From: Lepidodermella squamata
Lineage: Eukaryota; Animalia; Gastrotricha
Assembly (NCBI GenBank): GCA_047495785.1
Contig: JBLDXI010000140.1
Coordinates: 1-24,337 of the forward strand
Direction: 5' to 3'
Length of the DNA: 24,337 nt
Shown piece by piece: positions 1 through 24,337 of this stretch. The position numbers and the translations under genes were made by a program. Numbering within the stretch: the stretch's first letter is position 1; each line of letters begins with the position of its first letter. Below the pieces are notes generated by a model that was given only the letters and a program-made list of their open reading frames with translations, was not told the DNA's origin and searched no databases.

Positions 1-50
1 AGTTTTCACGATCGCCTCGGCTGATAAGTATTTTATATTAACGATTTTAG

Positions 51-144
51 AATCATCTTGGAAACAGAACCAGTCAATCTTCTTGGCCGAGTAGCTGTCA
101 GGCATGATGAGACGGTACCCATCAGTGAACAAAGTGTTGCTCAG
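51..144 (+). CDS. COPZ: Coatomer subunit zeta (COPI), penultimate exon; gene starts upstream of the window
   Basis: ttttAG acceptor (49-50) and CAG|GTGCGT donor (145). Translates IILETEPVNLLGRVAVRHDETVPISEQSVAQ, matching the zeta-COP C-terminal region as I recall it ([30 protein letters not shown]). Too short for the ORF track. Confidence 0.8.
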
Positions 145-323
145 GTGCGTACTTACTTAGCCGTTTTGAAGGGGTTATCACATTTGCTGCGTTGTCAGTT
201 TTGAAGTTTGTTCAAAGGTTAGCATTATCCTAGTGAACAAGTTTTGCGCGTCCCCATTAACGCTATTTGTGGACAATTAACTCAAAAGCATCTTCGATTT
301 GTGTGCTTTCTAAAAATTTCTAG

Positions 324-371
324 GTTTTGTCATCCTTGTTAAATCCGCCGAAGTCTGGTCGAAGGTTTTGA
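324..371 (+). CDS. COPZ: Probable last exon of the COPZ gene (VLSSLLNPPKSGRRF*)
   Basis: tttctAG acceptor at 322-323, phase 0 compatible with the donor at 145. Begins VLSS, like the canonical VLQS; the remainder is divergent. Confidence 0.45.
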   Translation, partial: VLSSLLNPPKSGRRF

Positions 372-650
372 TGACTGATCGTGGAATGTAGTTACACAAA
401 TATGATGGGCAAAGGAAACGGAGGATCGATAATACACTTTTTCTTAACAGTGTGTTGTGATTTTGAAAATTTCAATACTAATGAAGACAGGTTTTAACCT
501 TAACTGTCCGCGTTATCGCCACGATGCGCTTGCGCCATGAATAAAAATTTTCAAGAAGAGACGCATTTTCTTTATATAATTGCCTCCAATTTCAACTTAA
601 AATTTTATACATCTCATTCGACTTGAAATCAGACATTGCGCCCGGGAAAG

Positions 651-993
651 GTACGATATTTCTCGCGATTGTTTTCGTTTAATTTAGTTTGCCGTAACAA
701 TTTGATTGCTATTCATGCTCGCCATGTGTTTTTATTTATTTTTGTTCTATTCTGTACAGGTCTTACAAACAGCAAAGGAGCAGCTCAAGTGGGGCATCCT
801 CAAGTAAAATATGACCTATTTATCCGAGCGTGATTGGATCTGCAATACCAAACTGGAGTTAACTATTTCGGTTGTCTGCTGCAATTGGTGTCATAAATTA
901 AAAGCTATAGTCGAAATGACTTAATCTCTCTGATCTGGAAAATAATTGAACTAGCGGGCTTGGGTCATTTCAGTTGTTTGCTCTTTTCTTTAG
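651..993 (+). other. Probable 5'UTR intron(s) of Rab6
   Basis: AAG|GTACGA donor at 651; pyrimidine-rich acceptors ending at 759 (tgtacAG) and 993 (ttttctttAG), the latter 31 nt before the Rab6 ATG. Confidence 0.35.
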
Positions 994-1024
994 GCTTGAT
1001 TATAAGCTTTAACTATTACCAACC

Positions 1025-1728
<704 letters not shown>

Positions 1729-3836: not shown

Positions 3837-4755
3837 AATTGGTGTTGCACTGGTTCTGGGCCTGATCGGGAGTGAGATGCGTCCAGACGGCACCATAGTG
3901 AGCTCGAAAATGCCCAGCAGACTCGAGCAAACCGACGCGGAGATCCAAGCCGCCGAGACGGCTGCGAACGGGCTCGTCGATCACGTGCTCATCGACGAGC
4001 TGGGTCGCATCAAGGGCCTCGACGAGAACATCGCGGGGCACCCGGAGAAGGGCGGCGTCATCCTGCCGGTCATGCCGATGCCCATGCCCAAATCGGCCAT
4101 CCGGCCAGACCACTGCTACAGCTCGTTCTCGGGCAAGGAAGTCAAGCAGGAGCCCGGCCTGCTGTGGCACGTACCCTCGGGCACCCCGACCGAGCACTAC
4201 CATGTGCCGGTGACTTACCCGGTCACCGACGTCCAGTACACCCCGACCGCCTTCGAGCTGCTGCACCAGCGCATCGGCATCGGAGACGCCCAGCACCAGG
4301 AATTACAGGCCGAGTTGGCCGATTTGGTTGCAGCGGTTCGCCCGGCTAGTGGCGAGCAATCGCCTCTGTCTTTCGAGTCGGGGGCTGAACAAAACCCTGA
4401 AGACCTTTTCCGCGATATTTTGGCCGAAAGTGCCGCTCAGTACGATGAACCGGCGCCGTTCTCGCCGTCGAAGGGGCTGTCGCTTGATGACCCCATGTCC
4501 ACTTTCCTTGACCCGACTCAGGACATTTTTCGCTGGATGGAACAAGGAGCTCTGTTCGATCCTGCCTTGGATGGCGCTTCCACTTCACAAACGTCACAGG
4601 ACTTCTTCGGCGCCCAGCCACAGTTTGGCGACTACTCAGGCCAACACGACCTTCCTGCCGCGGATACTGACCGCACTATTGATGAACTGCTGTACGCTCT
4701 CGAGAGCGAGGAGAAAAGTGTGCCTTTTGCTTCTGGATTCGGTGCTGCTAGCTCG
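3837..4755 (+). CDS. CNC-family bZIP transcription factor, upstream exon (acidic/Pro-rich region); true start uncertain (ATG 3877 or a further upstream exon)
   Basis: Acceptor ttttcatttAG at 3835-3836; frame open from 3838 (IGVALVLGLIGSEMRPD...); phase-0 donor TCG|GTAAGT at 4756 joins in frame to the bZIP exon at 5549. Confidence 0.8.
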
Positions 4756-5548
4756 GTAAGTTAACATTATCAGCTTAATAATTATTTCGCTAACTTGGTC
4801 GGACTATGCCGAGAATTGATTGAATCAAGTTGGAAGGCAAATTCCATAGTCTTATGTGGCAGATATAAGAGAAAAAGTGTCAACAAGGCAATTAGTCAGT
4901 TGGATGATGGACAATATTTTTTCTTCGGTAATAATTGAAAAAGTGTAGCAAATGTGGCCCCTTGATTGAAAACTCCATTTTTAGGTGTAGATTCTATTCC
5001 AAATTTTTCTCAAATGTCTCTTATACCTTGTGCCCAAACGATATTTTCTTCGATTATTTTGTAACCCTGAGTAATATTTGGTGGGGTTTACAATTCTGCC
5101 ATAGTCAATGAGTGGGGTAAAAACTGCTGCTAGGGAAATTATTAAAAGTTTATAGAGTTAACAACTCCCGTTATACCACCCAGAATATCTCAAACTTGGT
5201 GGAACCAATGAATCCACAATTTTCTGATTGGTCGGGTGGTCGGCGTATAACGTGGATTTTTTTTATCACTTTCACGCCTTTTTATAGCATTTCGGCCGTA
5301 AAACACGACCATTTCAAATTTTTGATTTGAGATCACTACGCGCACCGAATGTTCGTTCGCGAGTTGGGGATTGACTAAAGTTAAGGATTAAGGAAAAACT
5401 AGGATAAATATTACGGATTTGGAATGCCCTGCACTAGAGACCTATCGATAGGTTAACCCAAATAAATCAGTTCGCGGATTCAACATATTCAATTGAATTT
5501 TCTAATTATTTTAATATTTTCTGATATTCTAATAAACTGTTTCCATAG

Positions 5549-6268
5549 GATCCACAGAAATTTGAACCGATCTACACTGACTGCGACCCACCGGTTACTT
5601 TGATCCCGGAACCTGCTATTGGACTGAACTTGAACGCGACTCGAAAACGCCGATCTGAACCGTCATGGTCCTCAGGCGCTTCATCCTCCTCAAAATCGTG
5701 CGCCTTCGACTACCACAACCACACGTATGACGACGGAGCCGCTGAACGTAGAGCCCAGAAAGTGGCGCGGGCTCGTTGCGGCACCTCCAGTGATGAATCA
5801 TCTGCAAGCGGAGCTCTCCGCTGCAAAGATTTGCAAGACTTCGAAAGACTACGCATTCCGTTCACCTACGAGGCGGTCATCTCGGCCGAACCGAGCGCTT
5901 TCAACTCGATGGTGGGCGATCACAGACTGAATGACGAACAGAAGGCGTTGATGCGGGCGGCCCGCCGGCGGGCCAAGAACCGAAATGCGGCGCGGCAGTG
6001 TCGCCAACGACGTGTCGACGAGGTTGAGGACCTGGCTGACGAAGTGGAGGGTCTAGAGGACGAACGGAACCGACTTGTGTCGGAGATGGACGAAATCGAC
6101 GCGGAAATCGCGGCTCAGCGAGCGGCGAATGAACGGCTACAGGCGTACATCCTCGAGGTGTACTCGCAACAGCGCCCGCCCACCCTCCGCGACGCTGAAT
6201 ACCGCCTGCAGGCGAACCCTCGAAATGGATCATTCACCCTGGTCGAACAACGCGGCATCAGGGCTTGA
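5549..6268 (+). CDS. CNC-family (NF-E2/Nrf/Cap'n'collar-like) bZIP transcription factor, last exon with CNC domain, basic region and leucine zipper
   Basis: Acceptor ttccatAG at 5547-5548. LRIPFTYEAVI..FNSMV..LNDEQKALMRAARRRAKNRNAARQCRQRR is followed by a heptad zipper. The C-terminal EYRLQANPRNGSFTLV resembles the Nrf Neh3 end (EYSLQQTRDGNVFLV). Confidence 0.9.
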   Translation, partial: DPQKFEPIYTDCDPPVTLIPEPAIGLNLNATRKRRSEPSWSSGASSSSKSCAFDYHNHTYDDGAAERRAQKVARARCGTSSDESSASGALRCKDLQDFERLRIPFTYEAVISAEPSAFNSMVGDHRLNDEQKALMRAARRRAKNRNAARQCRQRRVDEVEDLADEVEGLEDERNRLVSEMDEIDAEIAAQRAANERLQAYILEVYSQQRPPTLRDAEYRLQANPRNGSFTLVEQRGIRA

Positions 6269-7618
6269 AGGAAACTATTGTAAATAATATGAGTGATAGA
6301 AAGATCTGATCGAATGATATGAGTGAGTAGAAATTTATTTTGTGGTGTTTGGACGGATCGTTGAGAAATCGACGATTATATAATATAATAATCTGAGTAG
6401 AGTGTGGTCTAACTCATTTCCCTATCTTTTCTCAGGCCATTTTATTATCATCAGATTTCATTGTTTATTGGCGTGGGCCGTTAAATTAACTATCGCATGT
6501 TTATAATCTTATTTATTGTTGAGTTTCAGGTGTTGTTTATGGGTCATTGAGAAATTTCACCACCACCACCACCTCTTCCGAAAACTTGCAGCTTTTCAAA
6601 AGCGATTGATTTGACCTTTGAATGAACGAAAACACACCTAATAATAATTATTTTCTCGCTATCTATCTCTGTTATTGTTATTTATGACGGGCTGATGAGA
6701 ACGATGGTCTCGTGGGAGGTTTTACCACCGAATTATCAGAAATATCTATTCAAGACAGGTTGGTTTTCCGGCCTTCGCTCACCTCGTTCTGTTATTGGTT
6801 CTTCTGGTTGTTGTGTATAACAAATGGGAAAAATTGCTCTTGTATTACCGTATTATATATCGTAATCATGATTTTAAAAATTGAAAAAGCATTAATCAAC
6901 TGTGAGCGTGATGATTTGCTTCGGTTGTGTGAGTGTTATTTGACTTGAAAAGCTGACTTGAAAAATTTCTTCGCACATTCTTGTCTTCTCTCTGGGAAAC
7001 AGAAAAATTCGGTTATTTATCTGGTGATTGATAATCTAATAATATACACTATTCATTATGTGCATTCGTTTTTGCTCCATTTTCTTTGGGTAGGTGTTAG
7101 CAACACGATTATAATTATAAGATCCCGTGAAAAATTCGAAGTGTTCCACAGTTATAATATGTGCTGCTGAGCCATTGCAATGTCTTGCATGATGATGATG
7201 ATTGACTGGTTTAATATATATTAACATCGTCCATACATCAACTTGCATCAGTTTGTCCGGTATATTTTTCTGATTTTTTTATTATAATTTAATAATTACT
7301 ATTCTTCTTCATTTGTGCTGTCTGTGTAAAGAAATATATCGCGACTAAAAAGCTAACAAAGCCACAACATTGGGCCTCGAGTTGTAACTGCCTCAGAATC
7401 CAAGTTAACAAACGATTACCAAAAAATATAATTAGCGGTATTGTCTCTAAAATCTACGCTTTAATGTGCATTCCTTGTAACTTGTAAGAAAAAATATTTG
7501 TGTTATTATTATTTAATGTATTGACACTTAGTTATAGTATTTATCCGATATATATTTGAAAAATCATAATAAAAAATTGAATTTATATGTTTTTGTGTTT
7601 TTTAGTCAAATTGTTTCG

Positions 7619-7637
7619 TATATATATATATATATAT
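7619..7637. repeat. (TA)9 microsatellite immediately 5' of the KANSL2 start codon
   Basis: Direct read; mirrored at 23029-23047. Confidence 0.9.
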
Positions 7638-7639
7638 GA

Positions 7640-10600
7640 ATGTCAGGCGGGCGAGGTTCGAGGAAGAGCCGGCAATCGCCCGAGGCGATATCACCCGGCA
7701 CTTGCGCCTACGCCGAGCGGCTCTGTTCACGTCCTGTGGCCAATCCTTCGACTACGATGTGTTGGGCCCACGTGAATAGCGCGGCTACGAGTCCTCAAAA
7801 ATCGCGAAAGTCAGCCGGCGCATCGCCCGCGAAAACAGTCACTAGCCCAGCCGCCTTGAAACTATCAAAACCGAATGTCAAATCCGAGTTAACAGACGCG
7901 GAACAGCTGCGGAAGTTGACCGAAAAATACGTGGCGCCTCAATTACCTCTGAAAACGGAACATGTGAAAGCCGATGAAGTAGCAGGTCGAGTGCCGAGCC
8001 GGTGTGAATATCTCGAGGCGCTTGGTGCAATCAATGTCGATGACCCAGCCGCCCAGTTCTGTTCTATGGAGGATTCGGCGTCTGACGATGGCTCAGACGA
8101 GTTCGGCAGTACAGCCCCGCTCGGCCACGCCGGCGTTTATTTGGCCGAGGAAGTTGTCTCAGTCGCGTGTGACCGGATGAAACAATTAAGGCGGCTCTAC
8201 GTCGAAGAGTTGAAGCACATATCTGTTCAGTTGAAAGTGTCTCGGCGGCGCTATTTAACCGAAGTAGCGAGGGATCGACGGCGGCGAATCGGTGACCTTT
8301 TGACTGACTATATCGCGACAACGCCCGAGCAGCAGAGGTGTCAGCGTTTGCTAGCGGCAATGCGGCGGCATCGGCGGCGATATCCGTCTGTTGACAATGT
8401 GATACGGTGGAATTTGCGGTCGAAATTAAAGCACGGCAAGGTGGGCCACGTGCAACAAGCAGCGTCAACGTCAAGCGACGCGGCGGTGGTGGATCAAAAC
8501 GCTCCTGTTAACACGACGTGCTCAGTTGTATCGTGCGATCAAAATGTACTACCTTTGACAAAGTATTGCTCAAAACGTAAGTTCAATGCTGAAATGACTG
8601 TAAATGAAAATTTGTAAACGAATTTATAAATTTTATCAATCTCAATAGAAATTCAAGGGAAAAATCTGAAGAGAGCTTAGCGAAAGAAACTAAAGGGAAA
8701 GTTGTCAAAAACGGACGAAGGTTTAGAGCGAAACCGGACTGACTTGGGAAATGAAACGTGGAAAATTACGCACTTAACTAGCTCTCAAGTCATTTTTGGG
8801 TACGAAATTCATACATTTTCGTATTAATAATTAAAGTAGAAATCTAAATCAGGGATTATTGGCCAATTCAAAAATTTCTCTTGTCAGGCAAGGAGCCTGT
8901 ATTTTTCTCCACATCTTTTATTACATTGACGTTTTCATGCGTAAACCGGACTACAAAATCGGCCCGGTTCCCTTATAGCGCAAAACAAGCGATACACTTT
9001 TACCTATTTTAATCGACTAATTTTCGGTCGGATTTGATTCGGTCTTCGGTGTACTTACATTCGGTTTTAAGTTGGCCGCGGAGGAAATTGTTAAGGATCT
9101 AAATACGTGCACCGCCTAAATCTGAGTTTCAGCACTAAATATCAGCATTCAGAGCCTATTACTGCTGTTAAGCCAAGACGAGGCTCTCAGGCATTTTCGA
9201 CCACGCGCCACGCATGCCTAGGTTTTCACCGTATTCCGTATAACCGCGATTATAGGTACATGACAGCTCAAGCCACCTTTATAGTGCTATGAGGTAGACT
9301 TACTGTTTCGATAAGTGTTTGAATTGAGATTAGGATATGATGAACTCGTGCCTTTAGGCTCGCTCGCATAGTTAAGAGAAATGCGGCATATTATGCAAAT
9401 GAGCCATGATGCTGAGATTATCATCACTTTATGATATACTATTTTGATTGGGAATCGTTAACTTGCCCACTGCCGGCAACTCTGCTCCGGAACGCTACCA
9501 CAGTATGGGCTGTATTTCGGTAGCAGTAAAATCGTGCTATTTGCCCACGATTAAGGTAGACTATTCAACATCCTGCCTTATTTGCATAAACCGTCGGAAC
9601 CGTCGAAATATAATTTTTATTCTATATTCATCGGAAACTCGTATTTAAGTTAATATTTAAATATTATTCCGATGGTTTAAGACATCGTTAAATCACGAAT
9701 GTGGAATGAGTCACGAGAATGTATCAATTGAACCTCAATTAAAAGTCAAGCACGACCACGGCTAGCTCGGCCACGCCCACGGCCTCGACCCCGAATGTTA
9801 GCAGTTGGATCTTCTTGTAAGATTACAGCTTGGCCGCGTCCACGGGCAGCGCTTCGAGTAATCACATGTATTGGCTCTGCTTCAAGCACAGGCTGAACCT
9901 TATGCCCACGCCCACGGCCTCGACCACCGATGATGGCAGGTGGCTCCACTTCAATCACAGGTGGAATGATGGCAGCTTGGACTCCTCCGCGACCACGCCC
10001 ACGGGGTCGGCCTAGGCCCCTGCCCCACATTTTTACAACAATTTGATGTTCTTCTCTATATTCAAACATGACTTATGACCGTCGGAAAATGCCTAAATCC
10101 TTACTTCCAAACCGCTTGCGAGCATTCATTTTCACATGAAAATAACACGTTAGCCGCAGTATTACGATACCAAATGACAGTTCTATGGCCGTAGTAATAT
10201 AACTAGCTCCGTCAGCCATTATCGCCAGGGGCATGTTAAATGGCATAAATAATTTCAAACCACGAAAAATCACTTGATACGCTCGGCCATTCTCATTGCT
10301 TGAAACACCAAGAAGAATTGGGTGAAACTTTCGATTTTTGTCAGACGAGCCGCCGATAAAAATCTTGTGGCCGCCATGGATGATTTTGTGAGTAGCATCG
10401 ATTTGAAAGCCGCGGGCATAGACCAATAGATGCTCGTTGTCCGGTTTACGCAACCGTGATTCGCACCATGCTCGAAGCTCGGCAGTTCCATAATTGCTGG
10501 CGCCAGATTCTGGGCGACTTGAATCTTTCGCTTGAACTGTTGCTTTAGGTTTGAACACATCTCGTGAGAGTCGTCTGATCGTTAGGCGAGGGTGATTCCG

Positions 10601-12299
10601 CTCGCGAATGAACTTCGGCCTATCGTTGATATGATCCAGCACATATTTGCGGACATCAGGCGTGATGACTGCCGTCGATGCCTCAGGCTGAACGTGTTTC
10701 CCGCCAGAGGATGGAACCGCTTGATCTGGCGACCACTTAAGAACAGCCTTGTGCGGATAGATCTTGGCGCCAGACTTGTGGAACGGCAGACGTAGTAGCA
10801 GGTCTCCTTGTTGTTGCCGCTCTTCGTGGTGTCAATCCACAGGTCAGGATAGGTTTGCTTCACGTAATCCTTCGACTCTTGGTAAGAGATTGCGTACCGC
10901 AATGACTCGAAGTTATCCCATTCATTCTCGACATTGGGCCAAATCGCATCTTCCCCATCCTCAACAATACCAGGGTCAGCGCTCTCCTCATCATCAAACT
11001 CAGATTCGTCGAAATTCATCCTCATAAGCTTTTGATTCTATGTATTCATCATCGGTCTGACTGTCAGACTCGCAATTTCTCAACAAATCCATCATCGAAG
11101 ATGAAACGAAAGAATTATTAAATAAGTAAGGCTAGGTTATAGCTAGCTGTTTCAAATCAGGCCACGCGTATTCCGACAGCTTAAGCTCGTGTTCCAATGT
11201 AATAATGCAGTAAAATGACTTTTCGATAGTTTAATTTAGTTTATACACCCTTTTTATACATTTCCGACGTTTTAATTAAAAATGGTTCGCGGAAAGAAAT
11301 TATTAGTTTTATGGAATGATGGGTGCCCCAGGTCGATTGGGTGATCTTCTAAGTAACTGCTTCCAGAGGCGTCGCTAGAGTGGCAAGATGACATTCCTTT
11401 CCACGAATTAAGTGGTGGCTTTATATATTTAGTGTTACAGATGTTTATTTTTATTTTGTCTTGAATAGGATTAGTTAGAGCGGCTTTCTAGTACTGGAGT
11501 CACTATTTTAGTATGTGCAGTTGGCACACCCAATTCTTTATATATTTCGATTATAATCAATTTCCGATTATTTCAATGTTGGTATTTTCGCGAAAACACC
11601 GAAATAAAAGACTCTTTCAGCTGACCTGTCCTGCATACCTGGAATAATATTGCTCATAAATAAATAAGATCAAACCAAAAATTAGTACGTATGTAGATAA
11701 AAATCAAAATCATCTGATCGCACAAAATTTATACCGATGGAAAGTACTGATCAAGGGGATCTCGAAATTAAAGAAATCTTTCATGTCGGATTTTTTCGGG
11801 TGAGTTATGGCAGTTTCAATTTTTTTCCGAGATGACATTTTTGTGGCCGCACCCAAATATATACAGTCATAGTATCTAGGAAGGGAATATAAAATAATAA
11901 TTAAATTAAAAAGCTCATTTTAATTTAAATTTTTTTTTCATTTCAGATATTATGCTCGATCGAAGGCAACTGCTATTTTCGAAATGCCCCGGTTTCTTCA
12001 TCGCTCCGTGCGAGAAGCCGCCAGAAAGCGGCGATTTGCCTACAACACCTTCAAGCTTGGACGCTTCGAAGCCACTCCGCCACATCGACTGCGGTCGGTT
12101 GGTTGTTCAAAGCCCGAATCCTCCGCGAGGTCTCTCGAACTCGCCGGTCGCTTCTACTTCGATTTCAACCCGGAGTAGCGGAAATTCGCCGTCTCCGAGT
12201 GTCATGGCATCGGACACTTCTTCTTCAATGCTGTGCTCGATGCACCGGGCTCTGGTGCAAATTTCGTCGACACCTCCGGTGACTAAATCGGCAAAGTGA
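7640..12299 (+). CDS. KANSL2: KAT8 regulatory NSL complex subunit 2, copy 1; exons 7640-8576 and 11947-12299, 429 aa
   Basis: PLGHAGVYLAEEVVSVACDRMKQLRRLYVEELKHISVQLKVSRRRYL matches the KANSL2 signature (PLKHAGVYTAEEV..KLIRLQSLYIDQFKRL). The phase-1 intron C|GTAAGT (8577) .. tttcAG|AT (11946) rebuilds CSVVSCDQNVLPLTKYCSK-H-IMLDRRQLLFSKC, a zf-C3Hc3H finger. Confidence 0.9.
9746..11095 (-). mobile_element. Decayed Mutator-like (MULE) transposase in the KANSL2 intron, copy 1
   Basis: FQIDATHK (first D), FHPILLGVSSNE, IMADGASYITTAI (second D), RLTCYFHV (CxxH). Frameshifts, an in-frame stop and no visible region for the catalytic E. TIR/TSD not found. Confidence 0.85.
10555..10571 (+). other. 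Probable untrimmed PacBio barcode bc1003 + T overhang (technical artefact)
   Basis: ACACATCTCGTGAGAGT(C) replaces TACCT of the mirror arm (20107-20111 rc). Identity to bc1003 is from memory of the PacBio barcode set. Confidence 0.85.
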
Positions 12300-12399
12300 T
12301 TGATTGTGATTGATTGAAGATTTTGTTTTTGTTATTCTGACAGCCGTCCTCGCACTAGTTTTCAACAATGCATAATAATAATTTGATTTTAACGCCGAA

Positions 12400-12405
12400 A
12401 ATAAA
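12400..12405 (+). terminator. Probable polyadenylation signal of KANSL2
   Basis: AATAAA ~100 nt after the stop codon, followed by T-rich sequence. Confidence 0.5.
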
Positions 12406-12522
12406 ACTGCCAGTTCTTTTTTTGAAATTGTGTTTTGATTCGAAAAACTCCACCTTAATGAAATTTGCAGTTACCCGTGAACATGGAGAATAGAAGAGTT
12501 ATCTTTGTGAAAAAATGAATTA

Positions 12523-13428
12523 CTGTAAGCCGGTACAACTTTGAACACCCAAGTCCATGCAAACTTCGATGTGATGTGTAAATTAAACAGATGCGATTTT
12601 GGTCGGGTTTTCAACGTAGTTCGACTGGGGCCGCCCACCGTAACACCCTGATGTTTTCTCGGAAATTCGCAAGCGTAAGGATTTGGCAAGGGGTACCCCA
12701 AAAGTACAACTTTGAGCACCAACATTTCGTGAAATAAAAAATCCACCTTTATTCGTGCGCAGAGAATTTCGCGTGAAATTTGCGATTTTCACCTCACTGG
12801 TGTGCTTCATTCAGGAAAAAACGACGCGTGAAACGTATGATATGTAGCTTGGCACTCACCGCAGTGAAAATATGAAATAAATATATCCCAGGCGACTTCG
12901 CAGAAGTTGTGAGCACTCATCATTAAGTTTCATTTATGCCGCTTGTTAATATTATGAAAATAAATAATGCTGCATTATCATTTAGCCAATTGTAACAATT
13001 AGCGTACATGATTTTAGTTCATTCGATTGCTGCTGCGAGAAGCGACACTAATGCCAAGTGTGTGAGAACGTAGTGCGTGAAAATTGAAAAATAATAAGTT
13101 ATCAACATTTTTATGGTGGACTTTTTACTCGGTATTTGAGATTAATTCGTTGCCATTACGAGATAGGAAGTCGTTTTTCTGATCACTACGTTCTCTATGG
13201 AGCATAGTAGAGTTCAGTAAATGCGAACGAAGTCTATAAAAAACTTGAAACATCATACTCAAAGTCAAAATAATGAATTTCTATCGTTAGAAAATGGCAA
13301 AATGTTAGATCTCAACGAGACCTATATTCAGTAGAATTCCCAAGCGGTAGATTCCCACGGTTTCAGAGAAAAGCTGATTTGCGTGAAATGTTCAAAGTTG
13401 TACCTGTTCAAGTTGTACTGGATTACGG
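12523..13428. mobile_element. Non-autonomous Tc1/mariner-superfamily (pogo/Tc2-like) element, copy 1
   Basis: TA on both sides. Imperfect TIRs CTGTAAGCCGGTACAACTTTGAACA vs (rc) CCGTAATCCAGTACAACTTGAACA; the GTACAACTTTGA motif recurs subterminally and near 12704. No transposase ORF. Confidence 0.7.
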
Positions 13429-13566
13429 TATTGCGTTTTTTTATAAAGTGGGGGCACGTTAATTAATTGTGATAATCGAAAAACATGCTATTGCGAAATG
13501 AAGCACACAATTCAATTCTCGGACGAATTTCTGTTCCAAAAATTCCATCATTTAAGACAAAATTGA

Positions 13567-14354
13567 TCACATGGTTATCCAATAGCATTCACGTTACCGT
13601 CGCAATATACAGCGTCTCTTAAAAGCACAATCGTTTTAAATAAGCACTCAAAGGATGTTACAAGGCCGGTTTTTCGGCCACGGAACACTGATACTACTAT
13701 TGTCAGAATCGTCGATGAATTGCCGACTTCGTCGCCAGTTCTCAGCGACCTTGCGCTGATGCGTGGCTTCGGTTCCAGCGAAAACCGCCTCATCTGGAAA
13801 CCCAACAAAGCAAAATTCACCGAGCGCTTGATTTTACTATGCTGCTATTAGCCTTGTTTTTCTCATCCTGAAACAAACGATGGAATCGATTTCCAAGCTG
13901 AGCTTATTTTCGTTGACGATTTAGTAGCTATTAGGAACATGAAACGGGTTCGAGAGTTTTTGAAGCTAAGCCAATCAAGCATAATCGCGATATTCTTGAA
14001 AAATAGGGAACAATTCATTCTGAACAAAAACGCATCCAAATTTCGAACATTTGCCCCGATTCTATTTCTTCCTCTTCCGTCTCTCATCTTCCTTTTTTCT
14101 ATCTGTTCTTCCATCTGTTCTTCCACTCTTAGTCTTCCTTATTCTTCTCTTAAAAATTTCTGGGTAGTTTTCTGAAGTTGCGAAGCATAGAAGATGCGAA
14201 GATTATACTGTTATCCATAGCTTCAAAAATTATTGGTTCGTCAGAGTTCATCAAAGATTCTCGAGAAGGACAGAAACTTGTTCGAAATGCTACGTGTCTT
14301 CGAACAGCTAAATACATTTTTGTGATATATTTCACCCTTCAACAGAAAAAATAA
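13567..14354 (+). pseudogene. Coding-like sequence of unknown family, interrupted
   Basis: + frame open 13567-14175 except one TAG (13849-13851); a second open frame 14154-14354 follows a CT-rich tract. The minus-strand ORFs here read like antisense shadows. Confidence 0.3.
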
Positions 14355-14445
14355 TAGTAAAAATTCGGGTGGGTTTTTTTTGGGACTCTGACGGCCCTGT
14401 CGCGTAGAGCCGGATCTCTCTAAAATATCTTAATTTAATTTTAAT

Positions 14446-14507
14446 AGATTTCTTTAATGTCTGAAGATGACGTCAGATGACGTCGAAACGTCACAATCTC
14501 AAATAAA
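14446..14507 (+). ncRNA. Minimal type I hammerhead ribozyme motif, Penelope-like element pLTR type
   Basis: TGT-CTGAAGA-T-GACGTC-AGAT-GACGTC-GAAA-CG-TC-ACA: full core, 6-bp helix II, palindromic ACGT helix III, TGT/ACA helix I, and AATAAA at 14502-14507. Predicted cleavage after C14492. Confidence 0.75.
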
Positions 14508-14680
14508 ACAGGAAAATGGTCGCAAATTCTTCGCGCTGTTGTTCACATTAAAAATTACAAAAAACAAACATCTTATCAAATTTTAATAGTAATGTTAATT
14601 TCGCCGCCCCCTCCGATTTCTGGGTCTCACTTCTGCCAACTATATAAAATCGACCACTTCAGTCTCTTGTTTAGGGATTA

Positions 14681-14955
14681 CCGTCAACTGGGGTGACTTT
14701 ACCCAGTGGGGTGACTTCGACGTACCAAAAATGGGGTTACGCGGGGTGAATAAATTTTTCGAAATTTTCTAATGTCCTTAGATCTGTTGTATTGATGTGC
14801 ATTGTACACATCTAGACTGGCCTTTCCTTGGGCTATCCAACGGTACCCCACTCGCGGGGTATTTACCTTACAATCTTTGATTTTTGGTACGCCAAAGTCA
14901 CCCCATTTTGGTACGTCGAAGTGACCCCACTGCCCAAAGTCACCCAAGTTGACGG
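14681..14955. mobile_element. MITE (275 bp), Tc1/mariner superfamily, TA target duplication
   Basis: ~57-bp TIRs (14681-14737 / 14900-14955) beginning CCGTCAACT(G/T)GGGTGACTTT; TA at 14679-14680 and 14956-14957; internal GGGGTGACTT subrepeats. Confidence 0.9.
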
Positions 14956-15034
14956 TATTTCTTGGGCCTAAATTTTAGATGAAAATTTTGCTTTTTTTAA
15001 GGCGGATTTCTTAATATTTTTTAATTAATTATAG

Positions 15035-16345
15035 CGCGTGGCAGAGCAGACCAGCAAGCGAGAAATCGGTCAAACTTTGGATTTATTCCTCCTTATCTGC
15101 TGCGTGACATTTGCTGAGTGGAACTTGACCATGTTCGAAAGCAGCAATGACTATGAAAGTGAAACGGCCGCAACCTCTGAAAAGTTGTTCAAGGCTACGC
15201 TCGATGCCTTTCTACTTGTCGTCACAGATTTTATAGGGAAAATCAAGCCACTCATTTCATTTGCCTACGAACACTGTACCGTGTCAGTCGTAGCTGCTAT
15301 GCGGTTCCGTTACCTCAGCGAGAAAATGATGACTGCAGAGCTTGAACACCGCGACCAAGTTGCCCGAGAATTCTTTGCAATCGATCATTTGGTACGACTA
15401 GGTCTTGTAAATTTGCCTGAAATTCGTTTGCAGAAAATCGTCGAATGCCCCGCTTTTGCCGATAATTTCAGCTTCGGCTTGCTGAAATACGTTGCGTTCG
15501 CCTATCGATACGGTTGGCAGATTGAAGGATCTTCTAACGAGGAGCATTTGCAAGGCGCACTACAGCTTATTGAGAAACTTTTGTATTCCTCGAAGACATA
15601 TTTCGCGAAAAAATTTATCAAGCTTATCGGAAGTGAATTGGCTCACCAGGGACCACCTGGCCACTCAGAAATGACGTTTTGGAACGCTTTGTTCGAGCTG
15701 AAATACGACGAATATGACGAAATCGACTCGCCAGATTGCGCGGCGAGACTGTTGCGGTTTTTGGACAGACCTGGTCGCGAGATGATGTTGAAGAAAAATC
15801 GAGAAGGCCTGCGCCGCATTGGCGTCAAGTTTCTCTGCGATATCATTGAAGATATAGAAGAAGGAATGCTTGGATTCGGTAGCGAGGGCGAGCCTAGCTT
15901 TCCTAAGGAAAATTCGGCCCTGGGACTCGACGCAATAGTCGGCAGTAGATTGCCGATGATGTCTCTTAAAGAACTGATGACCGACCCGGCGCAGCCTCAA
16001 TTTAGCTTCCCTCCAAGTACTGTCAAAGATCTGGCTAGCAAGCTTGTTCAAATGATGAAATGTGATGCGTCCGGCGAGATGGATCGAGTTATGGCAGAAA
16101 TGGCTGCGCTTTTCGGCGGAAGAGCTGCTATGTTTTTCAATAAGAACCAGCTGTCGTCAACCAGCCAAATATCGTGCGTTGCCACCGGCATTTTGACGGG
16201 CAATCTCTTCATCAACGATGCTGAATTTCGCAACCAGTTGCGCAAGACCAAGGGCGTGAAGCAAGCCGTAGCTAATTTCAAAAAGAATCTGGATGTTCTT
16301 ACGAAATCTATAGCCGCTGCCAAGCAGGTTCCTATGAAACACTGA
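15035..16345 (+). CDS. Uncharacterised protein, probably a terminal exon (436 codons), likely mainly helical
   Basis: Long uninterrupted ORF with protein-like composition, directly preceded by an AT-rich acceptor (aattatAG at 15033-15034). No family motif recognised. Confidence 0.75.
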   Translation, partial: RVAEQTSKREIGQTLDLFLLICCVTFAEWNLTMFESSNDYESETAATSEKLFKATLDAFLLVVTDFIGKIKPLISFAYEHCTVSVVAAMRFRYLSEKMMTAELEHRDQVAREFFAIDHLVRLGLVNLPEIRLQKIVECPAFADNFSFGLLKYVAFAYRYGWQIEGSSNEEHLQGALQLIEKLLYSSKTYFAKKFIKLIGSELAHQGPPGHSEMTFWNALFELKYDEYDEIDSPDCAARLLRFLDRPGREMMLKKNREGLRRIGVKFLCDIIEDIEEGMLGFGSEGEPSFPKENSALGLDAIVGSRLPMMSLKELMTDPAQPQFSFPPSTVKDLASKLVQMMKCDASGEMDRVMAEMAALFGGRAAMFFNKNQLSSTSQISCVATGILTGNLFINDAEFRNQLRKTKGVKQAVANFKKNLDVLTKSIAAAKQVPMKH

Positions 16346-17247
16346 TCCTCGATATAATTGCATTCAGTATTGCCTAATCCAGCTTTTTGACATTTTCTTC
16401 GACTGTTTCGGAACTTTCAACTTGTTTCCCAATTTAATTTCAATAATCAAAAGTGAGAGTAAAATAAACAAATGCAATTTGTCGAAAGCTGATTGGCTCG
16501 TCAGTGATTCAAACCACCAGAATTTGTCTATAGAAAAGGAAGAGGGGGAAGATGGAAGAAGAAGAAGAACAGATAGAAAAAAGGAAGATGAGAGACGGAA
16601 GAGGAAGAAATAGAATCGGGGCAAATGTTCGAAATTTGGATGCGTTTTTGTTCAGAATGAATTGTTCCCTATTTTTTCAAGAATATCGCGATTATGCTTG
16701 ATTGGCTTAGCTTCAAAAACTCTCGAACCCGTTTCATGTTCCTAATAGCTACTAAATCGTCAACGAAAATAAGCTCAGCTTGGAAATCGATTCCATCGTT
16801 TGTTTCAGGATGAGAAAAACAAGGCTAATAGCAGCATAGTAAAATCAAGCGCTCGGTGAATTTTGCTTTGTTGGGTTTCCAGATGAGGCGGTTTTCGCTG
16901 GAACCGAAGCCACGCATCAGCGCAAGGTCGCTGAGAACTGGCGACGAAGTCGGCAATTCATCGACGATTCTGACAATAGTAGTATCAGTGTTCCGTGGCC
17001 GAAAAACCGGCCTTGTAACATCCTTTGAGTGCTTATTTAAAACGATTGTGCTTTTAAGAGACGCTGTATATTGCGACGGTAACGTGAATGCTATTGGACA
17101 ACCATGTGATCAATTTTGTCTTAAATGATGGAATTTTTGGAACAGAAATTCGTCCGAGAATTGAATTGTGTGCTTCATTTCGCAATAGCATGTTTTTCGA
17201 TTATCACAATTAATTAACGTGCCCCCACTTTATAAAAAAACGCAATA

Positions 17248-18153
17248 CCGTAATCCAGTACAACTTGAACAGGTACAACTTTGAACATTTCACGCAAATC
17301 AGCTTTTCTCTGAAACCGTGGGAATCTACCGCTTGGGAATTCTACTGAATATAGGTCTCGTTGAGATCTAACATTTTGCCATTTTCTAACGATAGAAATT
17401 CATTATTTTGACTTTGAGTATGATGTTTCAAGTTTTTTATAGACTTCGTTCGCATTTACTGAACTCTACTATGCTCCATAGAGAACGTAGTGATCAGAAA
17501 AACGACTTCCTATCTCGTAATGGCAACGAATTAATCTCAAATACCGAGTAAAAAGTCCACCATAAAAATGTTGATAACTTATTATTTTTCAATTTTCACG
17601 CACTACGTTCTCACACACTTGGCATTAGTGTCGCTTCTCGCAGCAGCAATCGAATGAACTAAAATCATGTACGCTAATTGTTACAATTGGCTAAATGATA
17701 ATGCAGCATTATTTATTTTCATAATATTAACAAGCGGCATAAATGAAACTTAATGATGAGTGCTCACAACTTCTGCGAAGTCGCCTGGGATATATTTATT
17801 TCATATTTTCACTGCGGTGAGTGCCAAGCTACATATCATACGTTTCACGCGTCGTTTTTTCCTGAATGAAGCACACCAGTGAGGTGAAAATCGCAAATTT
17901 CACGCGAAATTCTCTGCGCACGAATAAAGGTGGATTTTTTATTTCACGAAATGTTGGTGCTCAAAGTTGTACTTTTGGGGTACCCCTTGCCAAATCCTTA
18001 CGCTTGCGAATTTCCGAGAAAACATCAGGGTGTTACGGTGGGCGGCCCCAGTCGAACTACGTTGAAAACCCGACCAAAATCGCATCTGTTTAATTTACAC
18101 ATCACATCGAAGTTTGCATGGACTTGGGTGTTCAAAGTTGTACCGGCTTACAG
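17248..18153. mobile_element. Non-autonomous Tc1/mariner-superfamily element, mirror copy
   Basis: Mirror of 12523-13428. Confidence 0.7.
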
Positions 18154-18376
18154 TAATTCATTTTTTCACAAAGATAACTCTTCTATTCTCCATGTTCACG
18201 GGTAACTGCAAATTTCATTAAGGTGGAGTTTTTCGAATCAAAACACAATTTCAAAAAAAGAACTGGCAGTTTTATTTTCGGCGTTAAAATCAAATTATTA
18301 TTATGCATTGTTGAAAACTAGTGCGAGGACGGCTGTCAGAATAACAAAAACAAAATCTTCAATCAATCACAATCAA

Positions 18377-21300
18377 TCACTTTGCCGATTTAGTCACCGG
18401 AGGTGTCGACGAAATTTGCACCAGAGCCCGGTGCATCGAGCACAGCATTGAAGAAGAAGTGTCCGATGCCATGACACTCGGAGACGGCGAATTTCCGCTA
18501 CTCCGGGTTGAAATCGAAGTAGAAGCGACCGGCGAGTTCGAGAGACCTCGCGGAGGATTCGGGCTTTGAACAACCAACCGACCGCAGTCGATGTGGCGGA
18601 GTGGCTTCGAAGCGTCCAAGCTTGAAGGTGTTGTAGGCAAATCGCCGCTTTCTGGCGGCTTCTCGCACGGAGCGATGAAGAAACCGGGGCATTTCGAAAA
18701 TAGCAGTTGCCTTCGATCGAGCATAATATCTGAAATGAAAAAAAAATTTAAATTAAAATGAGCTTTTTAATTTAATTATTATTTTATATTCCCTTCCTAG
18801 ATACTATGACTGTATATATTTGGGTGCGGCCACAAAAATGTCATCTCGGAAAAAAATTGAAACTGCCATAACTCACCCGAAAAAATCCGACATGAAAGAT
18901 TTCTTTAATTTCGAGATCCCCTTGATCAGTACTTTCCATCGGTATAAATTTTGTGCCGATCAGATGATTTTGATTTTTATCTACATACGTACTAATTTTT
19001 GGTTTGATCTTATTTATTTATGAGCAATATTATTCCAGGTATGCAGGACAGGTCAGCTGAAAGAGTCTTTTATTTCGGTGTTTTCGCGAAAATACCAACA
19101 TTGAAATAATCGGAAATTGATTATAATCGAAATATATAAAGAATTGGGTGTGCCAACTGCACATACTAAAATAGTGACTCCAGTACTAGAAAGCCGCTCT
19201 AACTAATCCTATTCAAGACAAAATAAAAAATAAACATCTGTAACACTAAATATATAAAGCCACCACTTAATTCGTGGAAAGGAATGTCATCTTGCCACTC
19301 TAGCGACGCCTCTGGAAGCAGTTACTTAGAAGATCACCCAATCGACCTGGGGCACCCATCATTCCATAAAACTAATAATTTCTTTCCGCGAACCATTTTT
19401 AATTAAAACGTCGGAAATGTATAAAAAGGGTGTATAAACTAAATTAAACTATCGAAAAGTCATTTTACTGCATTATTACATTGGAACACGAGCTTAAGCT
19501 GTCGGAATACGCGTGGCCTGATTTGAAACAGCTAGCTATAACCTAGCCTTACTTATTTAATAATTCTTTCGTTTCATCTTCGATGATGGATTTGTTGAGA
19601 AATTGCGAGTCTGACAGTCAGACCGATGATGAATACATAGAATCAAAAGCTTATGAGGATGAATTTCGACGAATCTGAGTTTGATGATGAGGAGAGCGCT
19701 GACCCTGGTATTGTTGAGGATGGGGAAGATGCGATTTGGCCCAATGTCGAGAATGAATGGGATAACTTCGAGTCATTGCGGTACGCAATCTCTTACCAAG
19801 AGTCGAAGGATTACGTGAAGCAAACCTATCCTGACCTGTGGATTGACACCACGAAGAGCGGCAACAACAAGGAGACCTGCTACTACGTCTGCCGTTTCCA
19901 CAAGTCTGGCGCCAAGATCTATCCGCACAAGGCTGTTCTTAAGTGGTCGCCAGATCAAGCGGTTCCATCCTCTGGCGGGAAACACGTTCAGCCTGAGGCA
20001 TCGACGGCAGTCATCACGCCTGATGTCCGCAAATATGTGCTGGATCATATCAACGATAGGCCGAAGTTCATTCGCGAGCGGAATCACCCTCGCCTAACGA
20101 TCAGACAGGTATCAAACCTAAAGCAACAGTTCAAGCGAAAGATTCAAGTCGCCCAGAATCTGGCGCCAGCAATTATGGAACTGCCGAGCTTCGAGCATGG
20201 TGCGAATCACGGTTGCGTAAACCGGACAACGAGCATCTATTGGTCTATGCCCGCGGCTTTCAAATCGATGCTACTCACAAAATCATCCATGGCGGCCACA
20301 AGATTTTTATCGGCGGCTCGTCTGACAAAAATCGAAAGTTTCACCCAATTCTTCTTGGTGTTTCAAGCAATGAGAATGGCCGAGCGTATCAAGTGATTTT
20401 TCGTGGTTTGAAATTATTTATGCCATTTAACATGCCCCTGGCGATAATGGCTGACGGAGCTAGTTATATTACTACGGCCATAGAACTGTCATTTGGTATC
20501 GTAATACTGCGGCTAACGTGTTATTTTCATGTGAAAATGAATGCTCGCAAGCGGTTTGGAAGTAAGGATTTAGGCATTTTCCGACGGTCATAAGTCATGT
20601 TTGAATATAGAGAAGAACATCAAATTGTTGTAAAAATGTGGGGCAGGGGCCTAGGCCGACCCCGTGGGCGTGGTCGCGGAGGAGTCCAAGCTGCCATCAT
20701 TCCACCTGTGATTGAAGTGGAGCCACCTGCCATCATCGGTGGTCGAGGCCGTGGGCGTGGGCATAAGGTTCAGCCTGTGCTTGAAGCAGAGCCAATACAT
20801 GTGATTACTCGAAGCGCTGCCCGTGGACGCGGCCAAGCTGTAATCTTACAAGAAGATCCAACTGCTAACATTCGGGGTCGAGGCCGTGGGCGTGGCCGAG
20901 CTAGCCGTGGTCGTGCTTGACTTTTAATTGAGGTTCAATTGATACATTCTCGTGACTCATTCCACATTCGTGATTTAACGATGTCTTAAACCATCGGAAT
21001 AATATTTAAATATTAACTTAAATACGAGTTTCCGATGAATATAGAATAAAAATTATATTTCGACGGTTCCGACGGTTTATGCAAATAAGGCAGGATGTTG
21101 AATAGTCTACCTTAATCGTGGGCAAATAGCACGATTTTACTGCTACCGAAATACAGCCCATACTGTGGTAGCGTTCCGGAGCAGAGTTGCCGGCAGTGGG
21201 CAAGTTAACGATTCCCAATCAAAATAGTATATCATAAAGTGATGATAATCTCAGCATCATGGCTCATTTGCATAATATGCCGCATTTCTCTTAACTATGC

Positions 21301-23026
21301 GAGCGAGCCTAAAGGCACGAGTTCATCATATCCTAATCTCAATTCAAACACTTATCGAAACAGTAAGTCTACCTCATAGCACTATAAAGGTGGCTTGAGC
21401 TGTCATGTACCTATAATCGCGGTTATACGGAATACGGTGAAAACCTAGGCATGCGTGGCGCGTGGTCGAAAATGCCTGAGAGCCTCGTCTTGGCTTAACA
21501 GCAGTAATAGGCTCTGAATGCTGATATTTAGTGCTGAAACTCAGATTTAGGCGGTGCACGTATTTAGATCCTTAACAATTTCCTCCGCGGCCAACTTAAA
21601 ACCGAATGTAAGTACACCGAAGACCGAATCAAATCCGACCGAAAATTAGTCGATTAAAATAGGTAAAAGTGTATCGCTTGTTTTGCGCTATAAGGGAACC
21701 GGGCCGATTTTGTAGTCCGGTTTACGCATGAAAACGTCAATGTAATAAAAGATGTGGAGAAAAATACAGGCTCCTTGCCTGACAAGAGAAATTTTTGAAT
21801 TGGCCAATAATCCCTGATTTAGATTTCTACTTTAATTATTAATACGAAAATGTATGAATTTCGTACCCAAAAATGACTTGAGAGCTAGTTAAGTGCGTAA
21901 TTTTCCACGTTTCATTTCCCAAGTCAGTCCGGTTTCGCTCTAAACCTTCGTCCGTTTTTGACAACTTTCCCTTTAGTTTCTTTCGCTAAGCTCTCTTCAG
22001 ATTTTTCCCTTGAATTTCTATTGAGATTGATAAAATTTATAAATTCGTTTACAAATTTTCATTTACAGTCATTTCAGCATTGAACTTACGTTTTGAGCAA
22101 TACTTTGTCAAAGGTAGTACATTTTGATCGCACGATACAACTGAGCACGTCGTGTTAACAGGAGCGTTTTGATCCACCACCGCCGCGTCGCTTGACGTTG
22201 ACGCTGCTTGTTGCACGTGGCCCACCTTGCCGTGCTTTAATTTCGACCGCAAATTCCACCGTATCACATTGTCAACAGACGGATATCGCCGCCGATGCCG
22301 CCGCATTGCCGCTAGCAAACGCTGACACCTCTGCTGCTCGGGCGTTGTCGCGATATAGTCAGTCAAAAGGTCACCGATTCGCCGCCGTCGATCCCTCGCT
22401 ACTTCGGTTAAATAGCGCCGCCGAGACACTTTCAACTGAACAGATATGTGCTTCAACTCTTCGACGTAGAGCCGCCTTAATTGTTTCATCCGGTCACACG
22501 CGACTGAGACAACTTCCTCGGCCAAATAAACGCCGGCGTGGCCGAGCGGGGCTGTACTGCCGAACTCGTCTGAGCCATCGTCAGACGCCGAATCCTCCAT
22601 AGAACAGAACTGGGCGGCTGGGTCATCGACATTGATTGCACCAAGCGCCTCGAGATATTCACACCGGCTCGGCACTCGACCTGCTACTTCATCGGCTTTC
22701 ACATGTTCCGTTTTCAGAGGTAATTGAGGCGCCACGTATTTTTCGGTCAACTTCCGCAGCTGTTCCGCGTCTGTTAACTCGGATTTGACATTCGGTTTTG
22801 ATAGTTTCAAGGCGGCTGGGCTAGTGACTGTTTTCGCGGGCGATGCGCCGGCTGACTTTCGCGATTTTTGAGGACTCGTAGCCGCGCTATTCACGTGGGC
22901 CCAACACATCGTAGTCGAAGGATTGGCCACAGGACGTGAACAGAGCCGCTCGGCGTAGGCGCAAGTGCCGGGTGATATCGCCTCGGGCGATTGCCGGCTC
23001 TTCCTCGAACCTCGCCCGCCTGACAT
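18377..23026 (-). CDS. KANSL2: KANSL2, mirror copy; exons 23026-22090 and 18729-18377
   Basis: Translations identical to copy 1 in the ORF track; same splice sites. Confidence 0.88.
19583..20920 (+). mobile_element. Decayed MULE transposase, mirror copy (cleaner sequence)
   Basis: Acidic N-terminus MMDLLRNCESDSQTDDEY, frameshift near 19662, YYVCRFHK..H (WRKY/GCM-like Zn-domain remnant), frameshift near 20140-20160, MULE core, TAA at 20591, then an in-frame RG-rich tail. Confidence 0.85.
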
Positions 23027-24337
23027 TCATATATATATATATATATACGAAACAATTTGACTAAAAAACACAAAAACATATAAATTCAATTTTTTATTAT
23101 GATTTTTCAAATATATATCGGATAAATACTATAACTAAGTGTCAATACATTAAATAATAATAACACAAATATTTTTTCTTACAAGTTACAAGGAATGCAC
23201 ATTAAAGCGTAGATTTTAGAGACAATACCGCTAATTATATTTTTTGGTAATCGTTTGTTAACTTGGATTCTGAGGCAGTTACAACTCGAGGCCCAATGTT
23301 GTGGCTTTGTTAGCTTTTTAGTCGCGATATATTTCTTTACACAGACAGCACAAATGAAGAAGAATAGTAATTATTAAATTATAATAAAAAAATCAGAAAA
23401 ATATACCGGACAAACTGATGCAAGTTGATGTATGGACGATGTTAATATATATTAAACCAGTCAATCATCATCATCATGCAAGACATTGCAATGGCTCAGC
23501 AGCACATATTATAACTGTGGAACACTTCGAATTTTTCACGGGATCTTATAATTATAATCGTGTTGCTAACACCTACCCAAAGAAAATGGAGCAAAAACGA
23601 ATGCACATAATGAATAGTGTATATTATTAGATTATCAATCACCAGATAAATAACCGAATTTTTCTGTTTCCCAGAGAGAAGACAAGAATGTGCGAAGAAA
23701 TTTTTCAAGTCAGCTTTTCAAGTCAAATAACACTCACACAACCGAAGCAAATCATCACGCTCACAGTTGATTAATGCTTTTTCAATTTTTAAAATCATGA
23801 TTACGATATATAATACGGTAATACAAGAGCAATTTTTCCCATTTGTTATACACAACAACCAGAAGAACCAATAACAGAACGAGGTGAGCGAAGGCCGGAA
23901 AACCAACCTGTCTTGAATAGATATTTCTGATAATTCGGTGGTAAAACCTCCCACGAGACCATCGTTCTCATCAGCCCGTCATAAATAACAATAACAGAGA
24001 TAGATAGCGAGAAAATAATTATTATTAGGTGTGTTTTCGTTCATTCAAAGGTCAAATCAATCGCTTTTGAAAAGCTGCAAGTTTTCGGAAGAGGTGGTGG
24101 TGGTGGTGAAATTTCTCAATGACCCATAAACAACACCTGAAACTCAACAATAAATAAGATTATAAACATGCGATAGTTAATTTAACGGCCCACGCCAATA
24201 AACAATGAAATCTGATGATAATAAAATGGCCTGAGAAAAGATAGGGAAATGAGTTAGACCACACTCTACTCAGATTATTATATTATATAATCGTCGATTT
24301 CTCAACGATCCGTCCAAACACCACAAAATAAATTTCT

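Follow-up and report, generated by a model that had tools for sequence, protein, structure and literature searches.

The window, which is the complete 24,337-b contig JBLDXI010000140.1 (hereafter C140) of the Lepidodermella squamata assembly (121.2 Mb in 151 contigs), carries Rab6 and bZIP/Maf exons in a unique left flank, followed by two inverted arms, each with a KANSL2-like ORF, on either side of a spacer (Table 1). The Rab6 gene proposed in the first-pass annotation has a solid exon: Rab-6A is its closest solved relative, and its match to 4dkx stands ∼45 orders of magnitude above those to other Rabs. The duplicated gene had been named KANSL2. The likeness holds, in that the ESM Atlas leads from the ORF to KANSL2 clusters (0.90), but a firm assignment is not reached: the Pfam zf-C3Hc3H model (PF13891), with its cut-off of 27, scores the ORF at 12.7 bits (E = 0.16), and only model positions 1-20 are matched, by residues 294-312, the domain being apparently interrupted there by an intron. 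In a genome-wide six-frame scan, PF13891 rises above its cut-off only on contig C9. The ORF has a single homologue, P0001 (43% identity), for which there is no Pfam family, and it has no relative in the PDB. The two copies do lie tail to tail as described.

Table 1. Features of C140 and their counterparts on contig C21 of the same assembly (mirror-copy coordinates computed from a 100% complementary pair).
Feature	Position	Strand	Length	Counterpart or evidence
Unique left flank	1-6328	+		Base-for-base C21:355116-361443
Rab6 exon	1156-1728	+		PF00071, E = 4.6e-50; Rab-6A 4dkx, E = 1.2e-86
bZIP/Maf exon	5600-6268	+		PF03131, E = 2.5e-13
Left arm	6329-14111	+	7783 b	C21:361444-369217 read forward
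KANSL2-like ORF	7640-8614	+	325 aa	First exon of gene; mirror copy 22052-23026 (-)
MULE transposase remnant	10073-10642	-		PF10551, E = 6.5e-07
Sole stretch differing from C21	10552-14418	+		Barcode scar, 6 indels, 1 substitution, junction
Untrimmed PacBio bcAd1003 barcode (16 nt) with adapter T overhang	10555-10571	+		Single exact match in C140
Novel junction 14111/14112, probably chimeric	14106-14112	.		6-nt overlap TTCTTC, pyrimidine-rich tract
Spacer	14112-16563	-	2452 b	Reverse complement of C21:369218-371669
Spacer ORF	15038-16345	+	435 aa	No family match
Right arm	16564-24337	-	7774 b	Exact reverse complement of C21:361444-369217

The dead transposon noted in the arms corresponds to the MULE remnant. 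The spacer is the native continuation of the arm in C21, present once, and holds a MITE-like repeat; the hammerhead ribozyme suggested within it finds no Rfam match at gathering scores, nor at E ≤ 1 on 14300-14700. No family emerged for the spacer ORF or for a further ORF at 3877-4764.

The inverted repeat is present in the letters as claimed, with arms of ∼7.8 kb, and BLAST aligns them at 99.756% identity over 7787 columns. A substitution at 13577 separates them, as do four 1-b indels of homopolymer type (10781, 11447, 11719, and 13998) and a complex replacement at 10555-10572, 18 b for 5 b. The right arm does reach the last base, as had been stated, yet it does not run off a window: it stops with the contig itself, the end of which at 24337 had been posed as a check. 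Position 6329, taken earlier as the outer boundary of the palindrome, is merely the mirror image of that contig end and marks no biological limit. A genuine palindrome would have unique flanks beyond both outer boundaries, and here one side has none; its arms would also diverge mainly by substitutions, where these show one substitution, homopolymer indels, and a sequencing barcode.

The same locus lies on C21, a 2.67-Mb contig that carries it once, with no palindrome, and extends for megabases on either side. Positions 1-14111 of C140 equal C21:355116-369217(+), and positions 14112-24337 equal C21:371669-361444(-), on the opposite strand, such that every part of C140 is also found on C21, in single copy and collinear. 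A whole-genome search found no copy of the arm outside C140 other than the one on C21, and a third copy of flank or arm is absent from the assembly; the large contig spanning the locus, where a genuine palindrome would show both arms, has one. Among the 24307 31-mers of C140, only 263 are missing from the C21 locus, in nine clusters that all fall inside 10552-14418, and the contig therefore requires just one new junction. Both inner junctions had been put forward for checking; 14111/14112 is indeed novel, whereas 16563/16564 is simply the native C21:369217/369218.

The left arm follows C21 letter for letter through 10554; beyond that come the scar of the barcode and point differences at five sites. 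Over the whole contig there are six indels of 1 b each, all in runs of a homopolymer or dinucleotide (10781, 11447, 11719, 13998, 14381, and 14418), and a single substitution (A/G at 13577), while the remaining 20.4 kb equals C21 exactly. All eight differences lie between the barcode and a point ∼307 b beyond the 14111/14112 junction; the probability that eight random sites would all fall within such a 16% share of the contig is ∼4e-7 by our own arithmetic. In their type these differences resemble read errors.

The barcode remnant reported earlier is genuine. Its 17 nt, the T included, occur in the left arm only, inside the MULE remnant, and the 16-mer is the bcAd1003 sequence printed in bioRxiv 10.1101/2023.02.19.526140. 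Across the assembly the 16-mer occurs 181 times (150 forward, 31 reverse), as compared to 0 and 0 for its reversed control; it occupies contig positions 1-16 in 22 of the first 100 matches listed, C21 and C2 each end precisely with its reverse complement, and a terminal-type instance lies at C33:2937793-2937808. All eight barcode sites sampled carry the additional T. Because it recurs in so many copies, often exactly at contig ends, we read the barcode as marking where a read or library molecule begins, running rightwards. One barcoded HiFi library molecule starts at 10572, and the sequence from there on reaches the junction after 3.5 kb. This account of the seam is only approximate, as the barcode has replaced 5 bases with 18, rather than one for one. 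At one of five internal barcode sites sampled (C3:3656455), a 198-b perfect inverted repeat adjoins the barcode.

At the novel junction, C21:..369217 ends in the hexamer TTCTTC, which the reverse complement of C21:371670-371675 also reads; the seventh base is mismatched. The two C140-C21 alignments overlap at 14106-14130, with ∼25 b of imperfect two-way similarity around the junction and an 11-nt overlap in another register. The jump, from 369217 to 371669 on C21, spans 2452 b and joins neighboring segments of one locus on opposite strands. Published inverted chimeras of multiple displacement amplification (MDA) mostly have overlaps of 5-8 nt and distances usually <10 kb (PMC9984789), ranges that include both the overlap and the jump seen here.

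The assembly is probably the MDA/HiFi/hifiasm assembly of PMC11660948, for which a single gastrotrich was amplified by REPLI-g MDA, sequenced as HiFi on a shared SMRT cell, and assembled with hifiasm 0.15.2; the paper lists BioProject PRJNA1063365, and a trimming step is not described. That paper quotes inverted chimeras in MDA libraries at up to 1 per 10 kb, flags 3.1% of its reads with a chimera test, and reports no chimeric contigs for this species. It also gives a heterozygosity of 2.987%, at which two alleles would be expected to differ by SNPs in the hundreds across 24 kb, against a single substitution here. We therefore rejected C140 as a second allele or haplotig.

We conclude, with a probability of roughly 0.9, that C140 is a redundant fold-back chimera, most likely from MDA, and not a structure of the genome. 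The locus is held once and unduplicated on C21, so the palindrome is best taken as an artefact of amplification or assembly with no doubled gene, and this locus has the KANSL2-like gene in a single copy. The first-pass annotation had weighed a fold-back chimera of whole-genome amplification against a recent or conversion-maintained KANSL2 palindrome. The former is strongly supported by the single collinear copy on C21, the barcode, the read-error-like differences, and an overlap and jump typical of MDA inverted chimeras; the latter finds no support.

Lasken and Stockwell are said to have set out in 2007 the mechanism by which phi29 MDA yields inverted chimeras. For C140, synthesis running left to right through the locus would have broken off at C21:369217; the freed 3' end, TTCTTC, would have re-annealed to the complementary GAAGAA 2.45 kb farther on, on the displaced strand of like polarity, and extension would then have run backwards over the locus, giving the product A-B-rc(S)-rc(B). 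The chimeric read, having no place on the true path, would be retained by hifiasm and lengthened leftwards (1-10554) by normal reads of the locus, and the contig end would be that of the chimeric read or of a following normal read. With such leftward extension, the 7.8-kb arms would be in part the assembler's enlargement of a shorter chimera. From the confinement of the differences we infer that the junction is carried by a single read or a clonal set. It is not obvious why hifiasm should leave 3.9 kb of read uncorrected at ∼83× coverage.

C140 shares with the phi29 MDA chimeras reviewed in PMC9984789, also treated as “palindromic reads” in connection with Pacasus (PMC6218980), its segments on opposite strands, an intramolecular kb-scale jump, a 6-nt overlap, and its appearance in a long read of a probable MDA library. 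Unlike the usual examples, it forms a contig of its own in a deposited assembly, lengthened by normal reads; its origin in MDA is inferred, and its jump exceeds their 80-300-b mode in short-read data.

A physical chimeric molecule could instead have come from library preparation, through snap-back or ligation in SMRTbell end repair, or the assembler might have mis-joined reads via the CT-rich tract; we consider such a non-MDA artefact very improbable. The junction does lie in a low-complexity pyrimidine tract with two-way similarity, and Sim et al. 2022 (HiFiAdapterFilt, PMC8864876) traced both a “short truncated duplicate contig” (type B) and an “inverted duplicate adjacent to adapter” (type D) to HiFi reads with untrimmed adapters. 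C140 resembles those errors: it is a short contig that duplicates sequence present in full on a large one, it bears a library oligonucleotide and an inverted duplication, and it comes from reads that hifiasm assembled unsanitised. It departs from them in having only the 16-nt barcode and T, with the inversion kilobases away. An exact overlap of 6 nt (11 nt in the other register) is far below that of a HiFi string graph, which argues against a mis-join, and random ligation of two fragments ≤2.5 kb apart in a 121-Mb genome is very unlikely. The palindrome of a missed SMRTbell adapter was rejected outright: the window contains no hairpin adapter, the center is 2.45 kb of native single-copy sequence, and the barcode is well removed from the junction. 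The barcode standing without a hairpin adapter, VecScreen-type adapter screens would miss C140.

An inverted duplication that arose in vivo on the C21 haplotype, whether somatic or mosaic or in the very recent germline, by a template switch at the polypyrimidine/polypurine inverted tract, likewise seems very improbable, even though such a switch would also be consistent with 6 nt of overlap in a CT-rich tract. For a somatic or mosaic fold-back present in a few cells of the sequenced animal, captured and then amplified, the odds are smaller still. It predicts the C21 haplotype, one microhomology junction, and low read support, with which the data are compatible; its sequence would be indistinguishable from that of an MDA chimera, however, and inverted chimeras are abundant in MDA libraries, while the second barcode-adjacent fold-back among the five sampled sites points to a process in the tube. 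If true, an in-vivo fold-back would mean that a KANSL2-like chromatin-regulator gene is doubled in some cells of the animal.

It is extremely improbable that the germline truly carries the inverted duplication, in a fixed or heterozygous state, and with it a doubled KANSL2-like gene, C21 then being the other allele or a collapsed version. The palindrome stands in the deposited sequence, and short junction microhomology suits in-vivo replication-based template switching; like ampliconic palindromes of sex chromosomes and replication-based inverted duplications, C140 has long near-identical arms, a kb-scale unique spacer, and microhomology at the breakpoint. Against this, C21 crosses the locus with one arm, and near-complete identity to C21 in a genome of probably ∼3% heterozygosity leaves no second allele, though there may be a local run of homozygosity at the locus. 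Genuine palindromes further differ in that here the chromosome-scale contig of the same haplotype lacks the second arm, the only outer boundary is a contig end, one spacer junction is native, and the arms differ by sequencing-type errors and a barcode rather than by substitutions. We also rejected a spacer flipped between inverted repeats native to the locus, since C21 has no second arm.

For the biology of this gastrotrich the contig offers nothing new, and neither a change in NSL/MOF dosage nor the upkeep of a palindrome by gene conversion should be concluded from it. What it bears on is the quality of the data: this animal's genome was deposited with at least one redundant chimera among its contigs and with 181 untrimmed PacBio barcode scars, a barcode-only contamination that slips past hairpin-adapter screens; the chimera test of the probable source paper (PMC11660948), based on read ends, is blind to inversions within a locus like that of C140. 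Caution is accordingly due wherever this assembly is used for gene counts or duplicate BUSCO scores, or for annotation close to a barcode scar.

In the window, which is the whole of contig C140, the repeat finder recovered six collinear inverted pairs that jointly form one palindrome, and a global comparison gave 99.756% identity between its arms, confirming the near-perfect palindrome of ∼7.8-kb arms and 2.45-kb spacer described in the first-pass annotation. The right arm had been thought to run off the window, but C140 stops at 24337, so the arm ends with the contig rather than continuing into unseen sequence; position 6329 is a mere mirror image of that end, without meaning of its own.

Features of the C140 window and a further fold-back on C3
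Feature	Position	Strand	Details
Left arm	6329-14111		7783 b
Spacer	14112-16563		2452 b
Right arm	16564-24337		7774 b
Arm-arm substitution	13577		n=1
Arm-arm 1-b indels	10781, 11447, 11719, 13998		n=4; left arm shorter at each
Arm-arm complex site	10555-10572		18 b left arm vs 5 b right arm
Rab6 exon	1156-1728	+	
bZIP/Maf exon	5600-6268	+	
KANSL2-like ORF	7640-8614	+	Cys motifs resembling KANSL2 zinc fingers
MULE remnant	10073-10642	-	
ORF	3877-4764	+	295 aa
ORF in spacer	15038-16345	+	435 aa
Short interspersed repeat	14772-14962		spacer positions 661-851
Short interspersed repeat	14444-14580		spacer positions 333-469
Perfect inverted repeat	L024:1303-1975 (locus on C3)		198 b; left copy ends exactly at barcode + T scar

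Whole-genome searches of the assembly (121,234,032 b, 151 contigs) with flank, arm and spacer queries found one other place each, all on contig C21 (2,674,224 b). When C21:345001-385000 was aligned with the window, window 1-14111 matched C21:355116-369217 on the plus strand, and the reverse complement of window 14112-24337 matched C21:361444-371669. C21 reads flank, arm, S (C21:369218-371669) and further sequence, with a single arm, whereas C140 reads flank, arm, reverse-complemented S, reverse-complemented arm. C140 therefore follows C21 forward to 369217, jumps 2452 b ahead to 371669 and doubles back along the other strand. The “spacer” is native C21 sequence after the arm, and the junction at 16563/16564 is likewise native, which leaves 14111/14112 as the only novel one; in agreement with a single new junction, only 263 of 24,307 C140 31-mers, grouped in nine small clusters, are absent from the C21 locus.

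C140 and C21 agree at every base in the flank (1-6328), over the initial 4.2 kb of the left arm and throughout the right arm. All eight differences fall within 10552-14418: a barcode scar, five distal-left-arm sites and, within 307 b of the spacer's start, two 1-b indels. Of the seven point differences, one is a transition and six alter the length of a run by 1 b (AA/AAA, T5/T6, G/GG, A5/A6, T8/T7 and T/TT). Such a predominance of run-length changes is what a poorly corrected HiFi read shows; between diverged paralogues or alleles, substitutions dominate. The arms differ solely because one of them came from a barcoded read.

The complex left-arm difference consists of ACACATCTCGTGAGAG, a 16-mer, plus T (10555-10571), which has no other site in the window even with up to three mismatches allowed. 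A published methods section (bioRxiv 10.1101/2023.02.19.526140) prints this 16-mer as the bcAd1003 barcode; the strand of that PacBio adapter terminates in the barcode and a T. The “barcode remnant” noted earlier is thus real. The whole assembly holds 181 copies (150 forward, 31 reverse), compared with a chance expectation of ∼0.06 and none for the reversed control. Among the first 100 matches listed, 22 lie at contig position 1-16 (e.g. C2:1-16 and C4:1-16); the reverse complement closes C21 exactly (C21:2674209-2674224) and also closes C2 (locus L023 stops there), and a terminal-type reverse copy ends at C33:2937808. The extra T is present at all eight sampled sites. Small contigs carry several copies each, and C53 has six sites. 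The reads were evidently assembled untrimmed, with barcodes still attached. Given the barcodes at contig ends and the extra T, an internal forward barcode shows where a rightward-extending read begins; in C140 this point lies 3.5 kb to the left of the chimeric junction, which the read crosses.

At the novel junction, TTCTTC is both the end of the first segment and the reverse complement of C21:371670-371675, the stretch just ahead of the second segment; the next base mismatches. The two points lie in a pyrimidine-rich tract and its inverted, purine-rich counterpart, where a register 12 b away gives an exact inverted match of 11 nt. Inverted chimeras of multiple displacement amplification (MDA) are intramolecular, usually spanning <10 kb with overlaps mostly of 5-8 nt (PMC9984789), compared with 2452 b and 6 nt here.

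The favored explanation (probability roughly 0.9) is a fold-back chimera that arose in vitro, most probably during MDA, and was then fixed by the assembler. The first-pass view that artefact was at least as likely as biology is borne out by C140 being redundant with C21, by its one novel junction, by the barcode, and by where the differences lie and what kind they are. Positions 1-10554 would derive from normal reads and 10555 onward from a chimeric read, presumably with low read support. If that read reaches the contig end, its length is 13,783 b, not far from the 13,358-b mean read length of the probable source data set (PMC11660948); alternatively, a normal reverse-strand read may take over shortly past 14418. 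Under either layout, the 7.8-kb arm length would be partly the assembler's work, as the molecule's first arm need be only 3.5 kb.

The present assembly is very probably that of PMC11660948, in which a single Lepidodermella squamata was amplified by REPLI-g MDA and sequenced with HiFi, taking up half of a shared SMRT cell, which implies barcoded reads; the methods give hifiasm 0.15.2 and no trimming step, and the decontaminated assembly had 122,829,359 b in 157 contigs. The raw-assembly N50 in that paper, 2,937,808, coincides with the end coordinate of the reverse barcode on C33. Other artefact routes are improbable. A real somatic event is slightly less probable still. A germline palindrome is very improbable: at 2.987% heterozygosity (PMC11660948), a second allele would be expected to show hundreds of differences from C21 over 24 kb, and we see one substitution. 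The authors of PMC11660948 detected no chimeric contigs for L. squamata, but a read is flagged in their test only when its two ends map to different contigs, so an intra-locus fold-back escapes it.

The window comes from a small animal genome with compact genes, not from a human one. The naming of KANSL2 holds only in part: the Cys motifs and an ESM Atlas lead to KANSL2 clusters favor it, whereas Pfam zf-C3Hc3H stays below threshold in the ORF (E=0.16). A word search gave one database relative (P0001, 43% identity), in which no Pfam domain was found. The ORF, taken unspliced, can be called no more than “KANSL2-like”. In a six-frame genome scan, PF13891 exceeded the Pfam cut-off only at C9:4543846-4544028 (minus strand, 50.6 bits, 511-aa open frame), which may be the true KANSL2/INO80D-type gene, the window ORF being a divergent relative. 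The “dead transposon” of the arms is indeed there, as a MULE remnant. The 435-aa and 295-aa ORFs match no Pfam family, the former also no PDB relative, and may be lineage-specific genes or exons. A minimal hammerhead ribozyme proposed at 14446-14507 in the spacer finds no Rfam support: the whole window has no match at gathering scores, and at E<=1 14300-14700 yields no hammerhead, only a chance-level snoRNA (E=0.19). Copies of both spacer repeats number in the dozens (80-98% identity) and are spread over many contigs; that at 14772-14962 is often found in inverted pairs separated by a few hundred bases, and looks like a MITE.

One of five sampled internal barcode sites (C3:3656455-3656470), inside a multi-megabase main contig, also adjoins a fold-back. 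Short duplicate contigs and inverted duplicates are typical errors of HiFi assemblies from unsanitised reads (Sim et al., PMC8864876), and barcode-only scars are missed by screens aimed at the hairpin adapter. The C140 palindrome is a property of the chimeric contig, not of the genome.
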